Assembly: GCA_977020255.1 (NCBI GenBank)
Contig: CDROCS010000506.1
Coordinates: 3,100,001-3,164,000, forward strand
DNA length: 64,000 nucleotides
Reading direction: 5' to 3'
DNA from: Obrimoposthia wandeli
Taxonomy: Eukaryota
Shown: piece after piece, positions 5,089-63,403 of the stretch
How positions within the stretch are numbered: the stretch's first letter is position 1
Layout of the letters: every line of letters starts with the position of its first letter
Translations under genes and position numbers: made by a program
Notes under the pieces: generated by a model
Seen by the model: only the letters and a program-made list of their open reading frames with translations
Database searches by the model: none
What the model was told of the DNA's origin: nothing

Positions 5089-6408
5089 ATGAAAATTAAA
5101 TTAATAGCTTTATCAGTTATTTTAGCGTTGACAGGGTGTGATGATGATAACTCAAATGCTCAGGGATCTCAGGGGAGCTTATCTACATTTACATTTATAG
5201 ATGAACCCGTTAAAGGTCTTTATTATGAATCTGGCACTAACGTTGGCTGTACAGATCAAGATGGTAAGTACAAGGTAAACAAAGACCAACCTGTTAGCTT
5301 CTCTATCGGGAAATGCGATGAGCTAAACCAAGTAATATCTGGTAACAGTAATAAGGTAGAAATTGGCTTTGTTGAGAAACCAAACTCACTCACTACACCT
5401 TATGACTTGAAAGTAAATATTTCAACAAATGTGGCTGATGTAAATCCGATCGCGATTGCTTCAATATTGAAATCACTAAATACCAGTACTGATGATGTAA
5501 GATTAGATCTATCAGGTATAAAATTAAATGAGAATGGTGTTGATACGCGGTCAGCACTTAAAGGTTTAATATCGGAGCCAGGTAAAGATATCTCAACGGT
5601 ATTAAACCCTGGACTATTTACCCAATTACAAACAGTAAATAGCAATAGCAACAAAGCCTTCAAGAATACAGAATTTGTAGACGAAGCGACTGTTGAAAGT
5701 CAACTATCTCAAACCATTAAAGATTACGCTCAACCTGCCCTATTTACTGTGGGTGATGTAGCTGAGAGCTATATTGTGACTTCAAACAATGAAGCCTATT
5801 TTTTCAATCGCGATGAGGGTGATGATGGCAGTTTTTCAGCCCATGGCGTTGGAACAAAATATATATATAGCAATGGATTGGATTTAACCGCTTTAAACAT
5901 CGATACATGGGGCATACTAAGTCAGCCTTTTGGTAGTATTGGAGATATAGGCGATCTTTATATCGCTCAAGGTACTGTCATCGATAAATTGAAATCAGAA
6001 AGTAATGCTTGGTTGGTTGATAACAGTACGAGTTCAATTGAAACTTGGCATAAAGGCGTGTCGGTCACCGATTTGTCTGTATTAACTGGTGATTACATTT
6101 CAAAACCGGGTAGTGAATACGGCTTTAAGTTCACTTTCAAGTTTGTAAATGATGAGTTTACTCTGACTCAAACTAATGACAATAAAGATCCAAATGTCGG
6201 TGTACATTTTAGCGAGTCAAACGTAATTGTCGCCGATATTGTTTTAGGGAAAACGCATGTTAAATTTTCAAGCACACCGATTGAATACGTTATTATCCCT
6301 ACATCATCAGATGGAATGAATATCGCTTTATTAGCTAAAAGCACTTTTGCACCGAATTATCCAGATAATCCATATGCATTAGTCGACCGTCTAATCAAAT
6401 TAAAATAG
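5089..6408 (+). CDS. Hypothetical secreted lipoprotein
   Basis: Lipobox LALTG-C followed by an acidic/Ser-rich linker and FIDEPVKGLYY...TDQDGKY...FSIG N-terminal module seen in marine lipoproteins; function unknown. Confidence 0.75.
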   Translation: MKIKLIALSVILALTGCDDDNSNAQGSQGSLSTFTFIDEPVKGLYYESGTNVGCTDQDGKYKVNKDQPVSFSIGKCDELNQVISGNSNKVEIGFVEKPNSLTTPYDLKVNISTNVADVNPIAIASILKSLNTSTDDVRLDLSGIKLNENGVDTRSALKGLISEPGKDISTVLNPGLFTQLQTVNSNSNKAFKNTEFVDEATVESQLSQTIKDYAQPALFTVGDVAESYIVTSNNEAYFFNRDEGDDGSFSAHGVGTKYIYSNGLDLTALNIDTWGILSQPFGSIGDIGDLYIAQGTVIDKLKSESNAWLVDNSTSSIETWHKGVSVTDLSVLTGDYISKPGSEYGFKFTFKFVNDEFTLTQTNDNKDPNVGVHFSESNVIVADIVLGKTHVKFSSTPIEYVIIPTSSDGMNIALLAKSTFAPNYPDNPYALVDRLIKLK

Positions 6409-6423
6409 GTTGACGTAATTAGT

Positions 6424-6451
6424 CAATGGAGGCTCTCTGAAGCCTCCATTG
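6424..6451. terminator. Hairpin between convergent genes
   Basis: CAATGGAGGCT-CTCTGA-AGCCTCCATTG, perfect 11-bp stem. Confidence 0.7.
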
Positions 6452-6544
6452 AGACAGTCATATCTAATAACAGTTAGCAAGGTTCTTTGGTAAGGTTAGC
6501 TAGCTATATCTGTATTACGACGACAACAAGCTAGCAAACTATTA

Positions 6545-6985
6545 TTATACCGACGCTACTATTTCAGGTAGGCATTTTCGGCTAATAATAACGGCTCTGA
6601 CGTTGTCGTACACCCAGTTAAAGATAAAAGCATAAAGAGTAATGAAAACAGTCACCACAATATCCATCATAAAGGCATCTACAATGCTGATAGTTAAAAT
6701 GTAAGCCATCACAGGTACGGTGAGTATCAATAGCCCCGCTTCAAAAATAATGACATGAAATAACCGCAGTTTTAGGGTTCTTTTGTCTTTATCCCCAGGG
6801 AAGAATAGATCGAATAGCCAATTAAATAAGAAATTCCATACCATGGCCATACTGGCGATGACTATCATGGTTCCTGATAATACTTGTGGATCATGATTGG
6901 TAAATATTATTAATCCTAAGATAGAAAGAGAGACCGCTAATACTTCAAATAGTAGGGCGTGAAAAATACGTTCTAGTGTCGACAT
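6545..6985 (-). CDS. PACE (AceI-family) efflux transporter
   Basis: ERIFHALLFE, WNFLFNWLFD, RLFHVIIFEAGL and YAFIFNWVYD repeats diagnostic of PACE. Confidence 0.9.
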   Translation of the reverse strand: MSTLERIFHALLFEVLAVSLSILGLIIFTNHDPQVLSGTMIVIASMAMVWNFLFNWLFDLFFPGDKDKRTLKLRLFHVIIFEAGLLILTVPVMAYILTISIVDAFMMDIVVTVFITLYAFIFNWVYDNVRAVIISRKCLPEIVASV

Positions 6986-6995
6986 CGTTATCTCT

Positions 6996-7037
6996 TTATC
7001 AGTTAAGTGTTATCAGTTAAGTGTTATCAGTTAAGTG
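6996..7037. repeat. 3 x 14-bp tandem repeat TTATCAGTTAAGTG
   Basis: Three perfect copies immediately upstream of the PACE start codon. Confidence 0.95.
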
Positions 7038-7167
7038 CATTTTATTTTTCAAATGTGCTTGGTAAGCATGGCGAGGATTATGGCATTGGTGTGATTGACT
7101 GCAAAGTTAACAACCATCACTAAGTGTGATAGCTTGAGTGATTAATGGTCATGTGGGTAGAAAGCTG

Positions 7168-8052
7168 ATGTACAGTTTTGAGCAACTTAAAATATTTGTT
7201 TGTGTGTGCGAGAGTGGATCTTTTTCAGCTGCGGCTCGACAATTAAAGCGGGCACAATCAGGTGTGAGCCAATCCATCTCTAATCTCGAAATTGCGGTCA
7301 ATCAAGTGCTCTTTTTACGAGATAAAAATACGCCGGTGTTAACCGATAATGGCAAAGCATTATTGCCTATTGCCCGCGCGATCCTGCATCAGCAACATTT
7401 TTTCGATCAAAAAATAGAAGCATTAACTAGCGGTGATGAACATGAATTGGTGATCGCCATTGATGAAAGTGCCGTTAATCCGTTTTTGCTCGATTTACTC
7501 AGTGAATGCGCAGGGCGATTTCCGTTAACGCATATTGAAATTTTATTAGACACGACGTTTAATGTTGAAGAGATGGTGCGAAGTGGCAGAGCACAAATAG
7601 GCATCATTTATTTTAATGGCGCACTGAAAAGCGATATGGACCATTATATTATCGGTCACCAAAAATTTATTACCATGGTTTCTCCCGACCATGCTTTGAC
7701 GACGTTATCTCAAGTTAAAGAAGCTGATTTACAAGCGCATCGTCAAATCGTGTACCGCGGTGTGGAGTATAAAGAGTTGTGGTTTAGCTATGGTATCAGC
7801 ACGCATGCTTGGTATACGAATACCCATCAAATGCTGTTGGAACTGGCGACTCGTGGTGTTGGCTGGGCGGTCGTACCCGAGAGTATGGCTACGCCTTATT
7901 TACTTGATAAAAGGCTGGTGGCATTGCCTGTCGTATTCGAGCCCGATGGTTGGATGACGGCTGTCGGATGCTTGGTATCAAGACGGCAGAAGAGGGGGCC
8001 AGTGTTGGGGCATATCTTGTCAATGTTGCAGACTAAATATGATGTAAGGTAA
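7168..8052 (+). CDS. LysR-family regulator (AceR-like, divergent from PACE)
   Basis: YSFEQLKIF...GSFSAAARQLKRAQSGVSQSISNLE HTH; ATG 7168 preferred. Confidence 0.9.
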   Translation: MYSFEQLKIFVCVCESGSFSAAARQLKRAQSGVSQSISNLEIAVNQVLFLRDKNTPVLTDNGKALLPIARAILHQQHFFDQKIEALTSGDEHELVIAIDESAVNPFLLDLLSECAGRFPLTHIEILLDTTFNVEEMVRSGRAQIGIIYFNGALKSDMDHYIIGHQKFITMVSPDHALTTLSQVKEADLQAHRQIVYRGVEYKELWFSYGISTHAWYTNTHQMLLELATRGVGWAVVPESMATPYLLDKRLVALPVVFEPDGWMTAVGCLVSRRQKRGPVLGHILSMLQTKYDVR

Positions 8053-55396: not shown

Positions 55397-55915
55397 TTAC
55401 ATCATCCTCTTCAAAATACGCTTTCCCATCATTTCATGCTTAATGAGTGCGGCTAAATGACAAAGCACTAATGCTGCTAATAACCGGCAGGCGTACAGGT
55501 GCAGGGTTTCAAAAAAGTGAATACTATGTTGCTGTTGTAGTAGCTGTGGGATAGTCAATAATCCAAACACATTGACGTCATGACCCATCATTAATACCCC
55601 ACTAACGAGTACCAGCGAAACGAGTATATAAAGTAAGGTATGTCCGATGTGCGCGAGCTTGGTTTCCAATATCGACATTGCGGGGTGTGGTGCCGGTACT
55701 CCGTATTTTAATCTGTGGTAAATACGCCAGCAAAACAGCGGAATAAATACCGTTGTTAGCGATACATTGAAACGTAAAATATGACTTTTAATATTCGTGT
55801 CCAATTCAAAAAAGGCGATGTATAACCCCGAGATACTTGCCCATAAGATCACGAGTGCGGAGATCCAATGCAGGTATTTTGCGGTGCTATCAAATTGATG
55901 AGTGAGTTGATGCAT
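55397..55915 (-). CDS. Cytochrome b561 (YceJ/CybB-like)
   Basis: AKYLHW, HIGHTLLY, CHLAALIKH heme-ligand helices. Confidence 0.85.
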   Translation of the reverse strand: MHQLTHQFDSTAKYLHWISALVILWASISGLYIAFFELDTNIKSHILRFNVSLTTVFIPLFCWRIYHRLKYGVPAPHPAMSILETKLAHIGHTLLYILVSLVLVSGVLMMGHDVNVFGLLTIPQLLQQQHSIHFFETLHLYACRLLAALVLCHLAALIKHEMMGKRILKRMM

Positions 55916-55943
55916 ATGTGTTCCTACTTTCGTGCAGATAAAA

Positions 55944-55972
55944 AAACAGCGTAAATATGATTTACGCTGTTT
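55944..55972 (-). terminator. Terminator after gbpA
   Basis: AAACAGCGTAAAT-ATG-ATTTACGCTGTTT; T-run on the minus strand. Confidence 0.75.
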
Positions 55973-56027
55973 GACTTACATTGAGTTATTTTAAGCGGCT
56001 TATTAACAAGCGGCGATTAACTATGTG

Positions 56028-57452
56028 CTACGAGCAAGGGCCAACTAATACCCAACCTGTATATAACGTATCTGGAGTGCGGCCTACATCGGTCCAGCGC
56101 TCTGCACGATAAACATTATCTTGGTAAGAAACTTCTTGGCCTGGTTTGTATTGCTTGCTGATATCAATTGCTTGAATATCTTGGCAGTCGCCCGGTACTT
56201 CAGCATCTACGACATTAAAGTTATTTGACTCTTGTAGCGATAAGTTACTGTCATCGTTTGAGTTAGCGATGGAGACTAATTTAAAAGCGCCTGCCGTTAC
56301 ATTTTCAAGTGATAAGGTAAAACTTTTAACAGTATCGTTCACATTGTCAGATATTGATGCAATCGCTTTATTATTTGCATCAAAGATGGTGTTGCTGACA
56401 TTTAAGTTACCCACAGCTTCAATGCTAAAGGTCACCGTAACCGTATTGTTGTCGATCACATATTCATCTTCTAGACCTAAAACAGTGATGCTATCGTCAA
56501 CTGGAATATCAGCTTTAATAATATCCACTTCAACAGAAGTCAGGTTCGAATCTGCTTTTAGGTAAACAGGGTTGTTACCGTAAACAGGGGTGAATACATC
56601 TTCGTCACTCTTCGATCCCGCTTGAGCATTGGCTTGCTCGGTATTGATTGCTTTCGCGAGGTTGTAAGACCACGTGTTCTTTTGACCGTTGGCGGCAGAG
56701 TTAATTTCAATGATGGTTTCGGTGGTAAACGAACCCACAGATGAATCAAAGAAGCGTGCTTTGACTTTATCGCCAGCGACTAAATCTTCTTTAGGTGCGA
56801 TGGTGGTACTTTGCTGCCAAACATCTGCTGGTGGCGGTGGTGTGCCATCATCAGCAAATTCCACATCGATTACATTGTAAAATGCATTGGCGGTATCATC
56901 GATAGTCCACACTGACAGGATCACTTGATAACCATTACGTTCAGGCACATTACAGCTATGTGCTTCACCTAAATCTTTAAGCGGTTGCTGACCATCCATA
57001 TCAATCACACAGAAAGGATTCGCTAAATCAAACGACTCGCGCGTTAATGGGGCGTTTTGGTTCCAATCTGGCTTGGTGATGTAATACACATAATCTGTGG
57101 TTTTGTGATTGGCAGTGCTGAACCAATGGAAGTCATTTAGACCCGCTTGGATCTTAGTTTTGTACCATTTGTTTGACGATTGCAGGTCGAGTACATCAAA
57201 TGACCCGCCTTTTTGTGCTGATGCAATCTGACCATCAACAGGACCGTTAGTAGGAAAACCTTTTGATGCTTCCAAGCTTTGTCTATCATATGATGCATTA
57301 GCGCAATCATTTTTTGACCCGTTACTTGAGTGGCATAAATTAACACGAGAAGGGAACTCGCCAGCGACAAAACCGTGTGCAATAGCGAGTGTTGGCATTA
57401 AGGCTGCTGATACAGTGAGGGCACTGAATGACGCTAATATTATTTTTTTCAT
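56028..57452 (-). CDS. gbpA: GbpA-type AA10 lytic polysaccharide monooxygenase / GlcNAc-binding protein
   Basis: Signal peptide then His1 (A-HGF), TANH, NAFY; GbpA domains 2 and 3; C-terminal CBM5/12-like module (VSYQDNVYRAERWT...W). Confidence 0.9.
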   Translation of the reverse strand: MKKIILASFSALTVSAALMPTLAIAHGFVAGEFPSRVNLCHSSNGSKNDCANASYDRQSLEASKGFPTNGPVDGQIASAQKGGSFDVLDLQSSNKWYKTKIQAGLNDFHWFSTANHKTTDYVYYITKPDWNQNAPLTRESFDLANPFCVIDMDGQQPLKDLGEAHSCNVPERNGYQVILSVWTIDDTANAFYNVIDVEFADDGTPPPPADVWQQSTTIAPKEDLVAGDKVKARFFDSSVGSFTTETIIEINSAANGQKNTWSYNLAKAINTEQANAQAGSKSDEDVFTPVYGNNPVYLKADSNLTSVEVDIIKADIPVDDSITVLGLEDEYVIDNNTVTVTFSIEAVGNLNVSNTIFDANNKAIASISDNVNDTVKSFTLSLENVTAGAFKLVSIANSNDDSNLSLQESNNFNVVDAEVPGDCQDIQAIDISKQYKPGQEVSYQDNVYRAERWTDVGRTPDTLYTGWVLVGPCS

Positions 57453-57841
57453 ATCATAAACTCCATGTTAATTAAAATTTGTAACGCGCTGGCATAGAAC
57501 GGTGTTGTCCCCCATTGTCGCTCGATTATCATAACGACGTGTCACAACTGTCTCTAGAGTAATAATTATTTCTATTTGTAAAAACATGCCTAGTGGATAA
57601 ACGATCCCTTAGACCACTTCGTATCTAGGCATTTATTAAAATAAAATTAAAATTATTACTGTGGAATCAACGTCTGTATCAACATATATTCAAAATTATG
57701 TTGTTTAGTGGTGTTTTTATTTTAAACTTAGTGTTTAATGTCGCTGAATAATGACGATGATGAAGTTTGCTATTACGGTATTAAGTATGAATGGAAGTGA
57801 AAATGGGATATAAAAAATACTCTTATCCAAAAACAATAATC

Positions 57842-58756
57842 ATGAGGGTATTTTCTAAACTTTAAGAAAAAATACGATTCATATCATCTTTCAGCGCGAA
57901 GGTCTCCGGCTTATTAAATGAAAGTGGAAGCTGGGGCTCCTTTGATAGCTTGGATACGATATCTATTAGTCGTTGGGAGCGTGGTATCAATACCCCTTCT
58001 TTAACGAAGCAGTCTGAAATAGCGGAAGTGTTTGGTGTCGATCTGTTTAATATCTACAGTTCAGATGCTGATTTTGTCGAAGAAAGTGTATACGCAATAC
58101 AATTTTCTGCGGGCGAAAAAAATGACAAAGTAACGCACCCTTATTACAATAATGAGCAATACCATATCGAGTTCATTCACCCTGAACACGTTAAGTTTGA
58201 GCAATTTCTCAAACTTTGTTTAGTGTATGAAGGTAATCCTCGTTTACTGCCTACACATCAAGAAAAAATATCTGCAGCGTTGTTAACATCACTTACCTTA
58301 GTTTCTGCTCTTTGTAATTTTAGCCAATTGGTTGGTCATTGCCTGTTTTGTAAGGTTAATAGCAAAGCATTGTTTGAGTTTATGAATAACAGCATTGGTA
58401 TCCTTGATTTATTGGCCAGTACGCAACAACATCAAGCGAATGTATTGGTGGTGTTTTCGTCATTTGGGGTATCACCACAAATTGATAATCATATGATGTC
58501 TGTTTATCTGAACCAATTAGCAACGGATAAAACGATTGAGTATTTGAGTTTTAGTACTTGTGATAGCAAGTTGAAACAAAAGTTAATGCAGATGAAGATC
58601 CCGATGTTTAAAGTCAAACCGATTGAGAAAAACGCTAAAATTATTCAGAACTATTCGTTTATTATGAGTCGCTCTGAAGTTATGGCCAATCGAAATATGC
58701 TGATGTTGTCTGTTATACCGACACGAGACATGCAACCTACAACTACCGGTATATAG
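57842..58756 (+). pseudogene. XRE/HTH_3-family regulator with a premature stop at codon 8
   Basis: ATG 57842 reads MRVFSKL-TAA(57863-57865)-EKIRF...LLNES...LDTISISRWERG in one frame. The ORF-track start at TTG 57950 lacks the first HTH helices. Confidence 0.75.
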
Positions 58757-58766
58757 TGGAGTCATT

Positions 58767-59969
58767 ATGAATATTTTAATTGTTGATGATCAAAAGTTTG
58801 TCCGAGAAGCGATTAAAGCCGATCTTGCAGAGAACACCTTACATAACAAGGTTAAAACGTTCGAGGCTGAGAATGCCCAGCAAGGTATCGAAGCCATCGT
58901 TGCGATGAAAGGTAATATCGATTTACTTATCTTAGATTTAAAAATGGATAACAGTGATGGCATGGAAGTCATCAACTTTTTATCTGTACAGAGTCGCTAT
59001 GCCACGATACCACTGGCTGTGATCAGTTCGTCAGATAAACGTACGCTTGAGTTGGTCAACAGTATTGCCTGTGGGTTGAAATTGAATGTCGTGGGTGTGT
59101 TTGAAAAACCGATTGATATGGATACTATATTAGCTGAAACGCTACGTTTACAAAGTGTTAGTGATAATCCGCCAGAGGTTACGGCGACGGAGGCTGTGTC
59201 TGATTATGATATAACCCAGTTACTCGCAGATGAGCAAGTCTTGCTTTGCTTTCAACCTCAAGTTGATATGAAAAGTAAAGCGATTACGGGCTTTGAAGTG
59301 TTAGCGAGAATGTATGATGAAAATGGTTATATTTATCCTGATACCTTTATACCTTTGATTTATGAAATTGGACTAAACGCTCAATTTACCAAAATCATTA
59401 TTGCGAAAGCATTCAAACTTTGGACACATGAGACTAACCTCGCTGGTTATACTCTATCGATTAACGTCACCGCACAAGATTTGATTAATCATGATTTGAT
59501 TGATTACATTATCCGTCAAAAGCAAGCACACTCGCACATAAAGCTAATCTTAGAGTTGACCGAATCACAAGAAATAATGAATCAAGCGAGTGTATTAAAC
59601 TCAATCGCGCGACTGATAATTAATGGTATTCGCATCTCGTTGGATGATTTTGGTAAGAGCTATTCAACCTATGAACGTTTGGATACTATTCCCTTTAATG
59701 AAATTAAAATAGATCGCTCTTTTGTGTGTGATATTGATACCAATGAACAGCATCGTCTTATTGTTGAGTCGACGATCGCCTTAGCTAAAAAAATGTCGGT
59801 GAATGTCGTTGCTGAAGGCATTGAAACAGAAAGCGTGCTTAATATTTTAGATGATCTTGGTTGCGATATCGCACAAGGATATTTATATAGTCCGCCCATG
59901 GAAGGTCGTTATTTAAACGCGTGGATCAATCGCTACGAGCACAAAGAAGTGAGTGGCAATGACAAGTAA
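58767..59969 (+). CDS. REC-EAL response regulator (c-di-GMP phosphodiesterase)
   Basis: IVDD, LILDLKM, FEKP receiver motifs; FQPQ, EVL, ELTES, LDDFG, EIKIDRSF, AEGIET, QGYL. Confidence 0.92.
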   Translation: MNILIVDDQKFVREAIKADLAENTLHNKVKTFEAENAQQGIEAIVAMKGNIDLLILDLKMDNSDGMEVINFLSVQSRYATIPLAVISSSDKRTLELVNSIACGLKLNVVGVFEKPIDMDTILAETLRLQSVSDNPPEVTATEAVSDYDITQLLADEQVLLCFQPQVDMKSKAITGFEVLARMYDENGYIYPDTFIPLIYEIGLNAQFTKIIIAKAFKLWTHETNLAGYTLSINVTAQDLINHDLIDYIIRQKQAHSHIKLILELTESQEIMNQASVLNSIARLIINGIRISLDDFGKSYSTYERLDTIPFNEIKIDRSFVCDIDTNEQHRLIVESTIALAKKMSVNVVAEGIETESVLNILDDLGCDIAQGYLYSPPMEGRYLNAWINRYEHKEVSGNDK

Positions 59970-60252
59970 TATCAGAGATAGCTTAAAAGGCTTCTTTTGC
60001 CGTTATAGTGACGCGCGACGTTTACCACTATATCAAGCGCTAGTGAGCGAATTAACCAATATTCGCTCACAAGCTGGGTTAGTAGAAAACGCCGAAAAAT
60101 TGAATTCACTTAAGCATCAATTTAAAGGTATTTGCCGCTACCTGCACCTCGAACTAGATATGCAGATTGATGCCATGACGACACCTGAACAATTACTTTA
60201 CGCGGTCGATAATATCCACAAACAAGTTGTCGCGATTGAACATGAATTATAA
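59953..60252 (+). CDS. Stand-alone Hpt phosphotransfer protein
   Basis: LKHQFKGIC resembles the H-x-x-KG motif; about 100 aa helical; overlaps both neighbours. Confidence 0.7.
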   Translation: MAMTSNIRDSLKGFFCRYSDARRLPLYQALVSELTNIRSQAGLVENAEKLNSLKHQFKGICRYLHLELDMQIDAMTTPEQLLYAVDNIHKQVVAIEHEL

Positions 60253-62233
60253 ATTTAATCTAGGCAGTTATGTTTGTATTTGTCTGTTTGTCACCATGAT
60301 GATTATGGGGGCATTTACCCGTTATGGTTTGAATGGATTTACACGTAATCATGATAAAAAAGTATCGACGCTGATGGCGCTGAATGAAGAAAATTATTTG
60401 CAGCACAAGTTAATTATTAATGCGATGCGATCTTTTTTTAAATCATCAGATAGAGTAAAAGAAGCCGATTTTGAGATCTTTACTCAATCGTTATTAGGCG
60501 AACGAACTGCGCTATTCTTTACGATGACACCCGAATTGACGTTAGGTTATATTTCTGATGACGCTTTTGTTGCTGACTTAGATAAGTTGGAAGTAAGCTT
60601 AAATAAAGAGGGGAAGTTAAGCGGTGATTTACCTCATTATCAATTGGTTTCAATCGCGATTGATGAGCCGAACATGCCGTATTTGTTTTATGCGATACCT
60701 CTTGATAATTTATTGTTTAACATGAATAAATTAAAAGGTACTTGTTTAAAATACACCTCCGTACAGTTATCGACAACGAATCAAGATTGTGTGCGACGAA
60801 CTGCGAATAGAATGTCAGCATTTTTCCGTTACAGCACAGACTTAGATATCAGCGTCCCAGAGTATAATTTTTATTATATTTTAGGAATTGAGTCTCAAGT
60901 ATCCCCGTCAAAGCTGTTTGAATTTAGCTGTATGTTGTTTTCGATATTGGTTATCTGTGTGCTGATTTCGATATTGTTGTATTTTAAATTGATAAATAAA
61001 TATTTATTTATCAATATTGAACGTGAGAATAAATTTAATGTCGCGATGGTATCGAGTATTAATCATGAGATAAGGACGCCGATTAATGCGCTATTAGGCT
61101 ACAGCCAAATACTGAAAGATATGCCTAAAATCAGTGACGAGCACAGCGCTGTGATTGATAAAATGTTGTGGTCGGCTAATTTATTGTATTCAGTGGCAGA
61201 AAATACCCTTAACTACAGTAAGTCTACAGCGGGTGGTTTAATGCTTAATAGCGCGCCGATTAATACCTTGCAGTATATGGATAGTATTAAAGATTATTAC
61301 AATCGTTTGAGTATTCCTGCGGATAAGATCCTCGATTTTAATGTGAGCGATAAGTTACCTGCGGTGATTAGTGTCGATAGCACTAAATTATTTCAAATCA
61401 TAACCAATATGATTAACAACGCATTGAAGTACAGCACGGGTAAGACGGTACGTTGCCATGTTGATATCTGTCAACGCTTAGCCTTTCACGAAAATATGGT
61501 TTCAGGGCTGCAACAGAGTCCGTCATCGGCAGTATCATCATTAGCAGCATCACAAAACAGCCGCGGTTATTACTTACGTATTCTGATCCAAGATTCTGGT
61601 CTGGGTATGTCACAATCAACCAAGACGTTACTCACCAATCCATTTACTGTGGATGCGGAATCGCAACTAAAGCAAGTCTCTAGCATTGGTTTAGGACTGT
61701 ATACCTGTAATCAATTACTGACTCAAGTCGGTGGTAAATTAAGACTGCACAGTGTGAAGAATGAAGGTACTAAAATCATGCTGCATTTTCCCTGTCAGTT
61801 TGATCAAGCGGTACCGTCACAGCAGTTAAACTCACAGCAGCTTAACTCGACTGATTATGCCAGTATGCGTGTTTTGATTGTTGACGATAACAGCTTTAAT
61901 CTCGAAGTATGTAATGCCATGTTAGAAGATAAACAGTTTAATACGGTTTGCGCGAATAGCTCGAAAGATGGATTAGTCAAATTTGTTAAAGTAGAACCCA
62001 ACGTGGTGATTGTTGATTACCAGTTAGATGTGTTTAATGGACTTGAGTTAATTACTAAAATGAAATTTATGCAAAGCAATGCACAGATCCAATATTTCAT
62101 TTTATCCGCCAATGATAAAAATGAGATTGTCGATAGTGAGCACTATCCAGATGTTTATTTCATGCAAAAACCGTTTAATACCGCGATATTTTTAAGTTGC
62201 TTAGTAAGTGGAGTCGCTTCCCAGAAAGCGTAG
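60227..62233 (+). CDS. Hybrid sensor histidine kinase (periplasmic sensor-HisKA-HATPase-REC)
   Basis: Two TMs, INHEIRTP, NMINNALKY, QDSGLGM, IGLGL, IVDDN...IVDYQL...QKP; ATG 60242 is the likely start. Confidence 0.92.
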   Translation: MSRLNMNYKFNLGSYVCICLFVTMMIMGAFTRYGLNGFTRNHDKKVSTLMALNEENYLQHKLIINAMRSFFKSSDRVKEADFEIFTQSLLGERTALFFTMTPELTLGYISDDAFVADLDKLEVSLNKEGKLSGDLPHYQLVSIAIDEPNMPYLFYAIPLDNLLFNMNKLKGTCLKYTSVQLSTTNQDCVRRTANRMSAFFRYSTDLDISVPEYNFYYILGIESQVSPSKLFEFSCMLFSILVICVLISILLYFKLINKYLFINIERENKFNVAMVSSINHEIRTPINALLGYSQILKDMPKISDEHSAVIDKMLWSANLLYSVAENTLNYSKSTAGGLMLNSAPINTLQYMDSIKDYYNRLSIPADKILDFNVSDKLPAVISVDSTKLFQIITNMINNALKYSTGKTVRCHVDICQRLAFHENMVSGLQQSPSSAVSSLAASQNSRGYYLRILIQDSGLGMSQSTKTLLTNPFTVDAESQLKQVSSIGLGLYTCNQLLTQVGGKLRLHSVKNEGTKIMLHFPCQFDQAVPSQQLNSQQLNSTDYASMRVLIVDDNSFNLEVCNAMLEDKQFNTVCANSSKDGLVKFVKVEPNVVIVDYQLDVFNGLELITKMKFMQSNAQIQYFILSANDKNEIVDSEHYPDVYFMQKPFNTAIFLSCLVSGVASQKA

Positions 62234-62313
62234 TGGGCGGTATGATAGAACACATCTAATATGCTTGATTATTGCTGTGTCGTTTGATACAGCGGACTAC
62301 CTAAGGTGAACCT

Positions 62314-62707
62314 ATGGCTAAGTATAACCCCGTCACTAAAATGCAAACCTATGGCATTCACTCGCAGTGGCAAAGCAAATCAAAAGATTTACCGAGCATT
62401 CAAAAATTCACGACAGATATCCCCGCAGAAATTGATATTGAATTTGGTTTTATCGTTAATATTAAAAAAGCCCGTGGCGCTAAATTGCAATTTTGTATTG
62501 CTCATCCTGGTATTTTAGACGTCGATGGTAATGTACGCGCACCGTTTACCGGCGACGTGCATGTGACAAACAGTGATTGGAATTTTTACTTGGGCGACAC
62601 AGTATGGCAAACTGATTTGGGTCATTGATAAATGTGGTGACTCGTGCTATTAATCGTATCACTCGATGGTAAAATATTAAAGCGGATAAACCTTCAACAT
62701 CGCTTAA
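62314..62707 (+). pseudogene. DUF3859-family protein with a frameshifted C-terminus
   Basis: DIEFGFIVNIKKARG...DWNFYLGDTVW is followed by out-of-frame pieces VIDKCGD / LIVSLDGKIL / TFNIA-TAA (62705-62707). Confidence 0.7.
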
Positions 62708-62815: not shown

Positions 62816-63403
62816 ATGCGAGCATGGTATCGGATGAGTTTTATGAGTATATATATGGACTTTAAACAACAGCCTGAGTTGATCCGCAGTGCGTTAGAAG
62901 ATTTGTTACCGTTTCAACAGTGGGAATTTGTTGAACAGTTTTATCGTTTAATCGAATGGGTGAATGGTGCAAGCTCGTTATTAGAAAGTAATGACTGTGT
63001 GTTTAATGCCGCGGAAGATAATAGCGACCAGCAATATCCGTATGCGAAAAAATGCAGTGCACGATTAATGATTTTATTCCGAGATATTCCTGAAAATTGT
63101 CAGGACAAAAGTCTTGATTGGTTAATGAATAATATCCAGTCAATGGCCTCGTCGATGAAACCAGGCTTTAAAGCCGGTGCTATTGGCTTATCAAAATCAC
63201 CGACCTGTTATTTAGCCTTGGGTGATAAACCGGATTCCGGCGGAATGGGTTACCAAGTCACGTTAAACTTCTTTGCCTATGGAGAAGATGAGCAAGCGTG
63301 TTATGCGAACCTGAACGATGTATTGGCAATCACTCAAAAAGCATTACTGCGTGTAAATATGCGCATTAAAAATGGCGAAATAGATGCGCTTTACGCGATC
63401 TAA
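62816..63403 (+). CDS. Hypothetical protein
   Basis: 195-aa protein-like ORF; true start probably 62834 or 62843; no motif recognised. Confidence 0.65.
   Translation: MRAWYRMSFMSIYMDFKQQPELIRSALEDLLPFQQWEFVEQFYRLIEWVNGASSLLESNDCVFNAAEDNSDQQYPYAKKCSARLMILFRDIPENCQDKSLDWLMNNIQSMASSMKPGFKAGAIGLSKSPTCYLALGDKPDSGGMGYQVTLNFFAYGEDEQACYANLNDVLAITQKALLRVNMRIKNGEIDALYAI

Follow-up and report, generated by a model that had tools for sequence, protein, structure and literature searches.

A probable phosphorelay cassette with a RocR-type c-di-GMP phosphodiesterase output in Moritella, Photobacterium and Shewanella

Four adjoining genes in a 64,000-nt stretch of DNA filed under Obrimoposthia wandeli (GenBank assembly GCA_977020255.1, contig CDROCS010000506.1, positions 3,100,001 to 3,164,000; hereafter the window) probably form a conserved signalling cassette, in which a multistep phosphorelay would have a RocR-type phosphodiesterase of cyclic di-GMP (c-di-GMP) as its output and whose patchy distribution fits horizontal spread. 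We put the probability of this reading at roughly 0.72. The window is a segment of a Moritella chromosome, about 9 kb of which is collinear with Moritella dasanensis ArB 0140 at 93–100% protein identity, and the assembly that contains it (G000; 1.35 Gb in 6912 contigs) is a mixture of organisms. The four genes encode a helix-turn-helix (HTH) protein of the XRE type, a response regulator with receiver (REC) and EAL domains, a candidate histidine phosphotransfer protein (Hpt), and a hybrid kinase. They are located in the window as follows, with the open reading frames (ORFs) as first called on the last line:

57803..58756, plus strand: first gene, XRE-type HTH with a C-terminal domain of predicted GNAT fold (HTH_3 and predicted model)
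58767..59969, plus strand: REC-EAL response regulator (Pfam Response_reg and EAL)
59959..60252, plus strand: predicted single-domain Hpt, 97 aa from the conserved ATG (motif and fold)
60242..62233, plus strand: hybrid sensor histidine kinase (Pfam HisKA, HATPase_c and Response_reg)
57950-58756, 58767-59969, 59953-60252, 60227-62233, plus strand: ORFs as first called

At the likely ATG starts, successive genes are separated by a gap of 10 nt or overlap by 11 nt, which, together with the ORFs and their Pfam domains, bears out the original prediction of four tightly packed or overlapping genes, made from the letters of the window. The first gene starts at ATG 57803 and not at 57842; a GGAAG resembling a ribosome-binding site lies upstream, and the orthologues are annotated as proteins of 316–320 aa. 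The start of the Hpt gene is placed at ATG 59959, whose methionine is conserved among the orthologues, and the ORF itself opens at GTG 59953. The kinase probably starts at ATG 60242, since three orthologues have a stop just upstream of the matching methionine. The TAG stops in three Moritella kinase matches were considered as lesions and rejected, all of them being located upstream of the true ATG. Residues of the Hpt are numbered here from GTG 59953 and those of the kinase from the ORF that opens at TTG 60227.

The output protein combines a Pfam Response_reg domain (residues 3–123) with an EAL domain (E 9.2e-59). Its closest solved structure is that of RocR (3sy8), with which it aligns from end to end (E 1.7e-38), including the catalytic residues; in the receiver, the pair D7-D8 and the phospho-acceptor D57 align with their counterparts in RocR. 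The full catalytic set of EAL domains is kept (E177VLAR, N233, E263/E266, D293-D294, K314, E350/E353, and Q370), and the prediction is that the protein is active as a phosphodiesterase of c-di-GMP. The best NCBIfam model is that of PvrR (NF052596), but the score of 205.7 bits is far under the equivalog cut-off of 580, and orthology with PvrR was therefore rejected.

The small protein encoded next to it is a predicted Hpt with the phospho-histidine H55, an assignment based on the combination of motif, fold ranking, and position. The motif H55-x-x-K58-G59 is invariant in six sequences from Moritella and Photobacterium-type genomes, down to an identity of 29%. An AlphaFold 2 (AF2) model with a mean confidence score (pLDDT) of 90.8 forms a five-helix bundle, in which H55, K58, and G59 fall within the helix spanning residues 47–63. 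In an exhaustive structure comparison against 48,161 chains (VIA), this model matched ShpA first (Z 8.8, root-mean-square deviation 2.5, 91 aligned residues) and HptB second (Z 8.1); YojN-Hpt, a Shewanella Hpt domain, fungal and plant Hpts (AHPs), Ypd1, LuxU, and CheA-P1 were also among the top 26 chains. A Foldseek search of the model against the PDB returned nothing at E ≤ 1e-3, the best match being the Hpt of BarA (E 0.32). At the sequence level, neither Pfam nor NCBIfam matched the 99-aa ORF, and a profile of the six orthologues retrieved chance-level matches from the PDB sequences, with no Hpt among them. The Pfam Hpt model (PF01627) was found in one of the six orthologues at E 0.027, which does not reach a significant profile match.

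The kinase carries HisKA, HATPase_c, and a C-terminal Response_reg domain, with H280, the N, G1, and G2 boxes, and D597 all present. Pfam detected no Hpt domain in this protein, which ends about 16 residues past the receiver match. According to its hydropathy, a first transmembrane segment (residues ~12–32) is followed by a periplasmic domain of about 195 aa (~33–228) and a second transmembrane segment (~229–262). The periplasmic region had no Pfam match in any of the four lineages searched; the look-alikes proposed by a language model (CHASE, dCache, CSS-motif, and GAPES1) may serve as leads only.

From these domains and residues, the predicted folds, and the gene order, we infer a phosphate flow, a phosphodiesterase activity, and a regulator function of the following kind. 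The hybrid kinase would sense a periplasmic signal and autophosphorylate on H280; the phosphoryl group would then pass to D597 of the kinase receiver, to H55 of the dedicated 97-aa Hpt, and finally to D57 of the REC-EAL protein, where phosphorylation would alter the activity of the EAL domain and, with it, the level of c-di-GMP. The change might go in either direction; in the homologue ArrR, phosphorylation is inhibitory. The protein at the head of the operon, in which the XRE-type HTH is joined to the GNAT-fold domain, would most likely be a one-component regulator that responds to a ligand and controls the promoter of its own operon. The His-Asp-His-Asp relay that the original prediction had read into the four genes, ending in REC-EAL, is well supported as an inference from the domain content, the conserved phospho-acceptors, and the gene order across genera.

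The cassette is rare. A profile of the first protein, searched against 1.84 billion representatives, retrieved only eight proteins at E ≤ 1e-30, and the named bearers are Moritella, Photobacterium (P. profundum, P. frigidiphilum, and P. indicum), and Shewanella (S. decolorationis, S. mangrovisoli, and strains ANA-3, GD04112, and YLB-07). Among 401 genomes drawn from the order, the regulator is present in 15, comprising 12 Moritella and three others (3 of ~388 non-Moritella genomes). The order regulator, REC-EAL, ORF of about 100 aa, and hybrid kinase recurs at L003, on a Photobacterium-type contig that belongs to G000, in the Photobacterium cluster (L025/26), in Shewanella (L027-29), in copies L021/22 and L030, and in the three genomes sampled from the order (L047, L048, and L049). 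Identities of the non-Moritella copies to the window range from 30–47% for the regulator and 40–56% for REC-EAL to 24–39% for the kinase and 24–31% for the Hpt. Because the four-gene order recurs in Photobacterium, Shewanella, and further marine genomes at only 24–56% identity, the cassette is a selected unit, and its gene order is, on these comparisons, clearly under selection. The linkage is specific to this clade of regulators, since more distant HTH relatives of about 300 aa stand alone. The rare and patchy occurrence of the cassette would fit horizontal spread.

Several findings weigh against a conserved relay cassette. In one variant (L024), the place of the hybrid kinase after the Hpt is taken by a stand-alone receiver, and Shewanella sp. 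YLB-07 has only the regulator of the cassette, in plasmid-like surroundings rich in insertion sequences. In the Moritella genome G013 (L051, G013:C1:2039000-2058000, ~6307-7499), the kinase is cut to residues ~343–662, with the sensor half deleted, and the Hpt gene is frameshifted, and the cassette is therefore dispensable; the regulator and REC-EAL genes of this genome, which has no gbpA, are still intact. The Hpt lacks a significant match to any sequence family, and Z-scores of 8–9 are modest for a helical bundle. Finally, the regulator gene is broken in the assembly analysed here.

The break is confined to a short patch. An in-frame TAA at 57863-57865, codon 8 when read from ATG 57842, terminates the frame after MRVFSKL, and the sequence that follows is unlike any HTH, whereas the relatives read MRVFSSFLRKIRTEHNLSQEGLRALLNE... 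and possess an intact XRE HTH. In a DNA alignment, positions 57856-57937 (~80 bp) differ from all relatives by about 11 indels and about 20 substitutions, with cleanly aligning flanks. The open remnant of the gene encodes 268 aa from TTG 57950 and is devoid of HTH helices 1–2; in this frame, HTH_3 is matched over profile positions 25–52 only, at 21.7 bits against a cut-off of 23. An intact HTH_3 was not found in the window, where the TAA and frameshifts disrupt helices 1–2, whereas it is present in the orthologues, and the gene is open over 320–328 aa, without an internal stop, in 12 of the 13 Moritellaceae genomes.

One explanation of this damage, tenable but rather doubtful, is that the first gene is a pseudogene and that the cassette of this strain is deregulated or decaying. 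The stop codon and the density of indels and substitutions argue for such a lesion. Against it, the damage is limited to the ~80 bp of the patch, which was found in this assembly alone; the gene is otherwise 98–100% identical to that of M. dasanensis, and the three downstream genes are intact. Among contigs compared from four public sequencing runs, three cross the patch with the intact version, showing 11 gaps relative to the window. The contigs of a near-identical strain (X3) match both flanks with 0 mismatches, depart at 57855, and rejoin at 57938, with the intact version exactly in between. The exact strain was found in none of the sequencing runs searched, the best share of words being 0.53. 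The patch is either a local consensus error of the assembly or a strain-specific lesion; we lean towards a consensus error, because the mixed 1.35-Gb assembly also contains contigs of a second Moritella and of a Photobacterium-like genome. Similar local consensus errors may occur elsewhere in this assembly. Both additional genomes carry a cassette of their own: contig C1647 (L002/L018/L020), the second Moritella with about 80% protein identity, has the cassette together with gbpA, and contig C122 (L003/L017/L019), which represents the Photobacterium-like genome, has the cassette without gbpA.

Upstream of the cassette, the opposite strand encodes a chitin-binding lytic polysaccharide monooxygenase (LPMO) of the GbpA type, separated from the regulator gene by a spacer:

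56028..57452, minus strand: gbpA-type four-domain chitin-binding LPMO (Pfam LPMO_10, GbpA_2, GbpA_D3, and CBM_5_12)
57453..57802, no strand: AT-rich divergent control region, 350 bp, GC content 0.28-0.32
57586..57632, no strand: inverted repeat ATGCCTAG-N31-CTAGGCAT, the arms of which coincide with two back-to-back -35-like hexamers

The divergent LPMO gene of the original prediction was confirmed by these four domains on the minus strand; with the NCBIfam model GbpA (NF009690) the protein scores 454.5 bits, just under the cut-off of 481. The control region between the genes is AT-rich as described, but its length is 350 bp when counted from ATG 57803, and not ~390 bp.

The original prediction also saw in the cassette a dedicated module for lowering c-di-GMP in concert with attachment to chitin or host surfaces, which would co-regulate gbpA through the divergent region; this now appears unlikely. 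The arrangement itself is constant: gbpA is divergent from and adjoins the regulator gene, about 350 bp away, in all nine of the 13 Moritellaceae genomes that have gbpA. Conserved blocks are found in the spacer across Moritella, and promoter-like sequences that are consensus matches only (TAGGCA-N16-TAAAAT on the plus strand and TAGGCA-N16-AATAAT on the minus strand) place a symmetric TGCCTA/TAGGCA pair over -35-like hexamers of both strands. The decay of kinase and Hpt in G013, where the full region was available and gbpA is lacking, is at least compatible with such a coupling. Three of the 12 cassette-bearing Moritella species (G004, G012, and G013), however, have kept the cassette with no gbpA anywhere in the genome, and all four cassette genes are intact in G012 (the contig of G004 ends inside the Hpt gene, so that its kinase is outside the comparison). 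The core sequences of the repeat arms, TGCCTA and TAGGCA, occur in all Moritella copies, spaced by 31 nt here and by 16–18 nt in L009, but L009 retains the repeat and the spacer blocks without gbpA. An Rfam search of both strands from 55900 to 62700 (E ≤ 1) had no match, so that a GEMM c-di-GMP riboswitch is absent from the gbpA leader. Outside Moritella, the TGCCTA/TAGGCA pair was encountered only in L021, with a similarly short spacer, among the lineages compared, and a search upstream of the regulator for a shared operator found no 8-mer common to at least four of the six lineages.

None of the fetched flanks of non-Moritella copies (Photobacterium, Shewanella, and four other lineages) contains gbpA or another LPMO gene; the neighbours are instead cupin, bactofilin, and M23 genes, DTW and MFS genes, a TonB receptor gene, MFS, AraC, and GGDEF genes, or pfa genes. 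Synteny of the four genes with gbpA is conserved in Moritella only (9 of 12 species), and an adjacency restricted to one genus is expected from common descent, which suffices as an explanation. On this comparison, gbpA is a Moritella-specific neighbour outside the conserved cassette, and the claim of a dedicated link is not supported; outside the genus, the outcome is the one that the original prediction had itself named as refuting it, an adjacency not conserved in relatives. A local regulatory link between gbpA and the cassette within Moritella, via the shared 350-bp region, is conceivable as a secondary feature; if true, this link, whose basis is adjacency in one genus, would bear on the biology of chitin colonisation.

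The regulator of the predicted relay cassette was modelled with AF2 from the intact M. dasanensis orthologue and an alignment of 11 sequences (pLDDT 82, predicted template-modelling score 0.80). In the model, a helical HTH at the N-terminus is followed by an alpha/beta domain of about 200 residues, which Foldseek places in the GNAT fold, with 135 matches in the PDB at E ≤ 1e-3. The top matches are Naa60, agmatine N-acetyltransferase, and bacterial GNATs (E ~1e-5, probability 1.0, target template-modelling scores 0.5–0.63), and the list includes PA3270 and acyl-homoserine-lactone (AHL) synthases. The ESM Atlas contains clusters with an HTH and a GNAT-like domain, and its GNAT clusters align to residues ~97–290. 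The XRE regulator proposed for the head of the operon was therefore recovered in part: the HTH is present in the orthologues, but the protein is no plain XRE regulator, given its GNAT-fold domain of about 200 residues, and it is broken in this assembly.

Sensor domains fused to XRE HTHs are a known theme, as in XRE-cupin proteins (PMC7901475), and by analogy with other XRE-sensor fusions (PMC7901475) a sensory role of the GNAT-fold domain seems more likely than an enzymatic activity. Its similarity to the XRE-cupin type of one-component regulator consists in an N-terminal XRE HTH followed by a domain of a small-molecule-binding type (PMC7901475); it differs in that the C-terminal domain has a GNAT fold without a Pfam model and that genes of this clade occur in tight linkage with a predicted phosphorelay operon. 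That the protein is instead the functional core of the system, an active acetyltransferase acting on a relay component or a maker or sensor of an acyl signal, with the HTH serving autoregulation, is very unlikely: the confidently predicted GNAT fold with AHL synthases among its matches, the clade-invariant residues (HPYY, YExN, QxxGH, SxxG, N215, Y221, K256, and R276), which suggest a defined pocket, and the tight coupling of the regulator stop to the REC-EAL start would agree with it, but the regulator has no match to an acetyltransferase Pfam model, its template-modelling scores to enzymes are just 0.5–0.6, the position of the acetyl-CoA loop reads S205-x-x-G208-x-S/T instead of the canonical Q/R-x-x-G-x-G/A, with only G208 invariant, and the fusion of an XRE HTH to a sensor domain already has precedent.

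In Photobacterium, Shewanella, and three further genomes, a fifth small gene, encoding about 60–75 aa, is located directly upstream of the regulator and overlaps its start. Its product has the motif TGLYF..R.WI.YT..PE.ID..Y..LL...TNGTRYDLY.LLL.K and belongs to no Pfam family; neither L030 nor any of the Moritella copies has the gene. The copies were found at:

L027:7841-8035; L025:7829-8053; L047:8367-8558; L048:8493-8693: fifth small gene
L049:9920-10105 (minus strand); L024:6753-6971; L021:5351-5512: fifth small gene

In L024 the gene is situated downstream of the cassette, and in L021 it contains three in-frame stops. A speculative and rather improbable extension would be an ancestral five-gene c-di-GMP cassette composed of the ~65-aa protein, the XRE-HTH/GNAT protein, REC-EAL, Hpt, and hybrid kinase, in which the GNAT domain would link the phosphorelay-controlled phosphodiesterase to acetylation or to a signal in the form of acyl-CoA or a metabolite; recruitment beside gbpA in Moritella might then have placed chitin-surface attachment and c-di-GMP turnover under one bidirectional promoter region.

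Downstream of the cassette, a DUF3859 gene (62314-62628) begins 80 nt 3′ of the kinase gene, with no terminator-like site in the gap, and is followed by an ORF of 195 aa (62816-63403) that belongs to no family. The two are syntenic across most Moritella copies, although L012 has only part of the DUF3859 gene and none was detected in L051; beside the cassette of other genera, both are absent.

The literature searched contained no paper on this cassette, its architecture, XRE-GNAT fusions, or the Photobacterium and Shewanella orthologues, in agreement with the original prediction that it is not a described system. Its closest counterparts are the pairs of kinase and REC-EAL protein RocS1/RocR (SadS/SadR) of Pseudomonas aeruginosa and ArrS/ArrR of Aeromonas veronii (PMC11841396), with which it would share a phosphate route that leads from a receiver-bearing membrane sensor kinase over an Hpt to a phosphodiesterase of the REC-EAL type. 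RocS1 and ArrS belong to the unorthodox kinases; their sensor domains are of the PBP/PAS kind and their Hpt is part of the kinase itself (PMC11841396), whereas the putative Hpt of the cassette is a separate protein of 97 aa and the periplasmic sensor domain is unrelated and without a Pfam match. Unlike RocS1/RocR, the cassette has no DNA-binding response regulator of the RocA1 type; the operon is headed by the XRE-HTH/GNAT-fold protein. A second parallel exists with PvrS/PvrR, which operates with RcsC/RcsB in P. aeruginosa PA14 and also pairs an Hpt-less hybrid kinase with a REC-EAL protein. Hybrid kinases without an Hpt need an external one to reach their response regulator, and PvrS is expected to depend on such a protein to reach PvrR; strain PA14 required no single-domain Hpt, and the Hpt of RcsC acts as the relay (PMC3842833). 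The cassette differs from PvrS/PvrR in that a dedicated Hpt gene would be situated between the genes of kinase and REC-EAL protein. VieSAB of Vibrio cholerae, a marine gammaproteobacterium that is associated with chitin, resembles the cassette in placing a REC-EAL phosphodiesterase under the control of a sensor kinase. In that system the HTH is located at the C-terminus of VieA and the Hpt is fused to VieS, whereas the cassette encodes the HTH on a separate protein with a GNAT fold and has a free predicted Hpt.

How Hpt-less hybrid kinases reach their REC-EAL partners is often unclear, as in the case of PvrS/PvrR. By encoding a dedicated Hpt between the partners, the cassette would provide a compact natural system for direct tests of a relay via such a protein. 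In addition, it marks out a rare clade of XRE-HTH/GNAT-fold proteins, as well as an associated small protein, with a genetic link to c-di-GMP turnover in gammaproteobacteria of cold seas and the deep sea. Measured against the known systems, the cassette falls into the type represented by RocS1/RocR and PvrS/PvrR, of which it is an uncharacterised variant.

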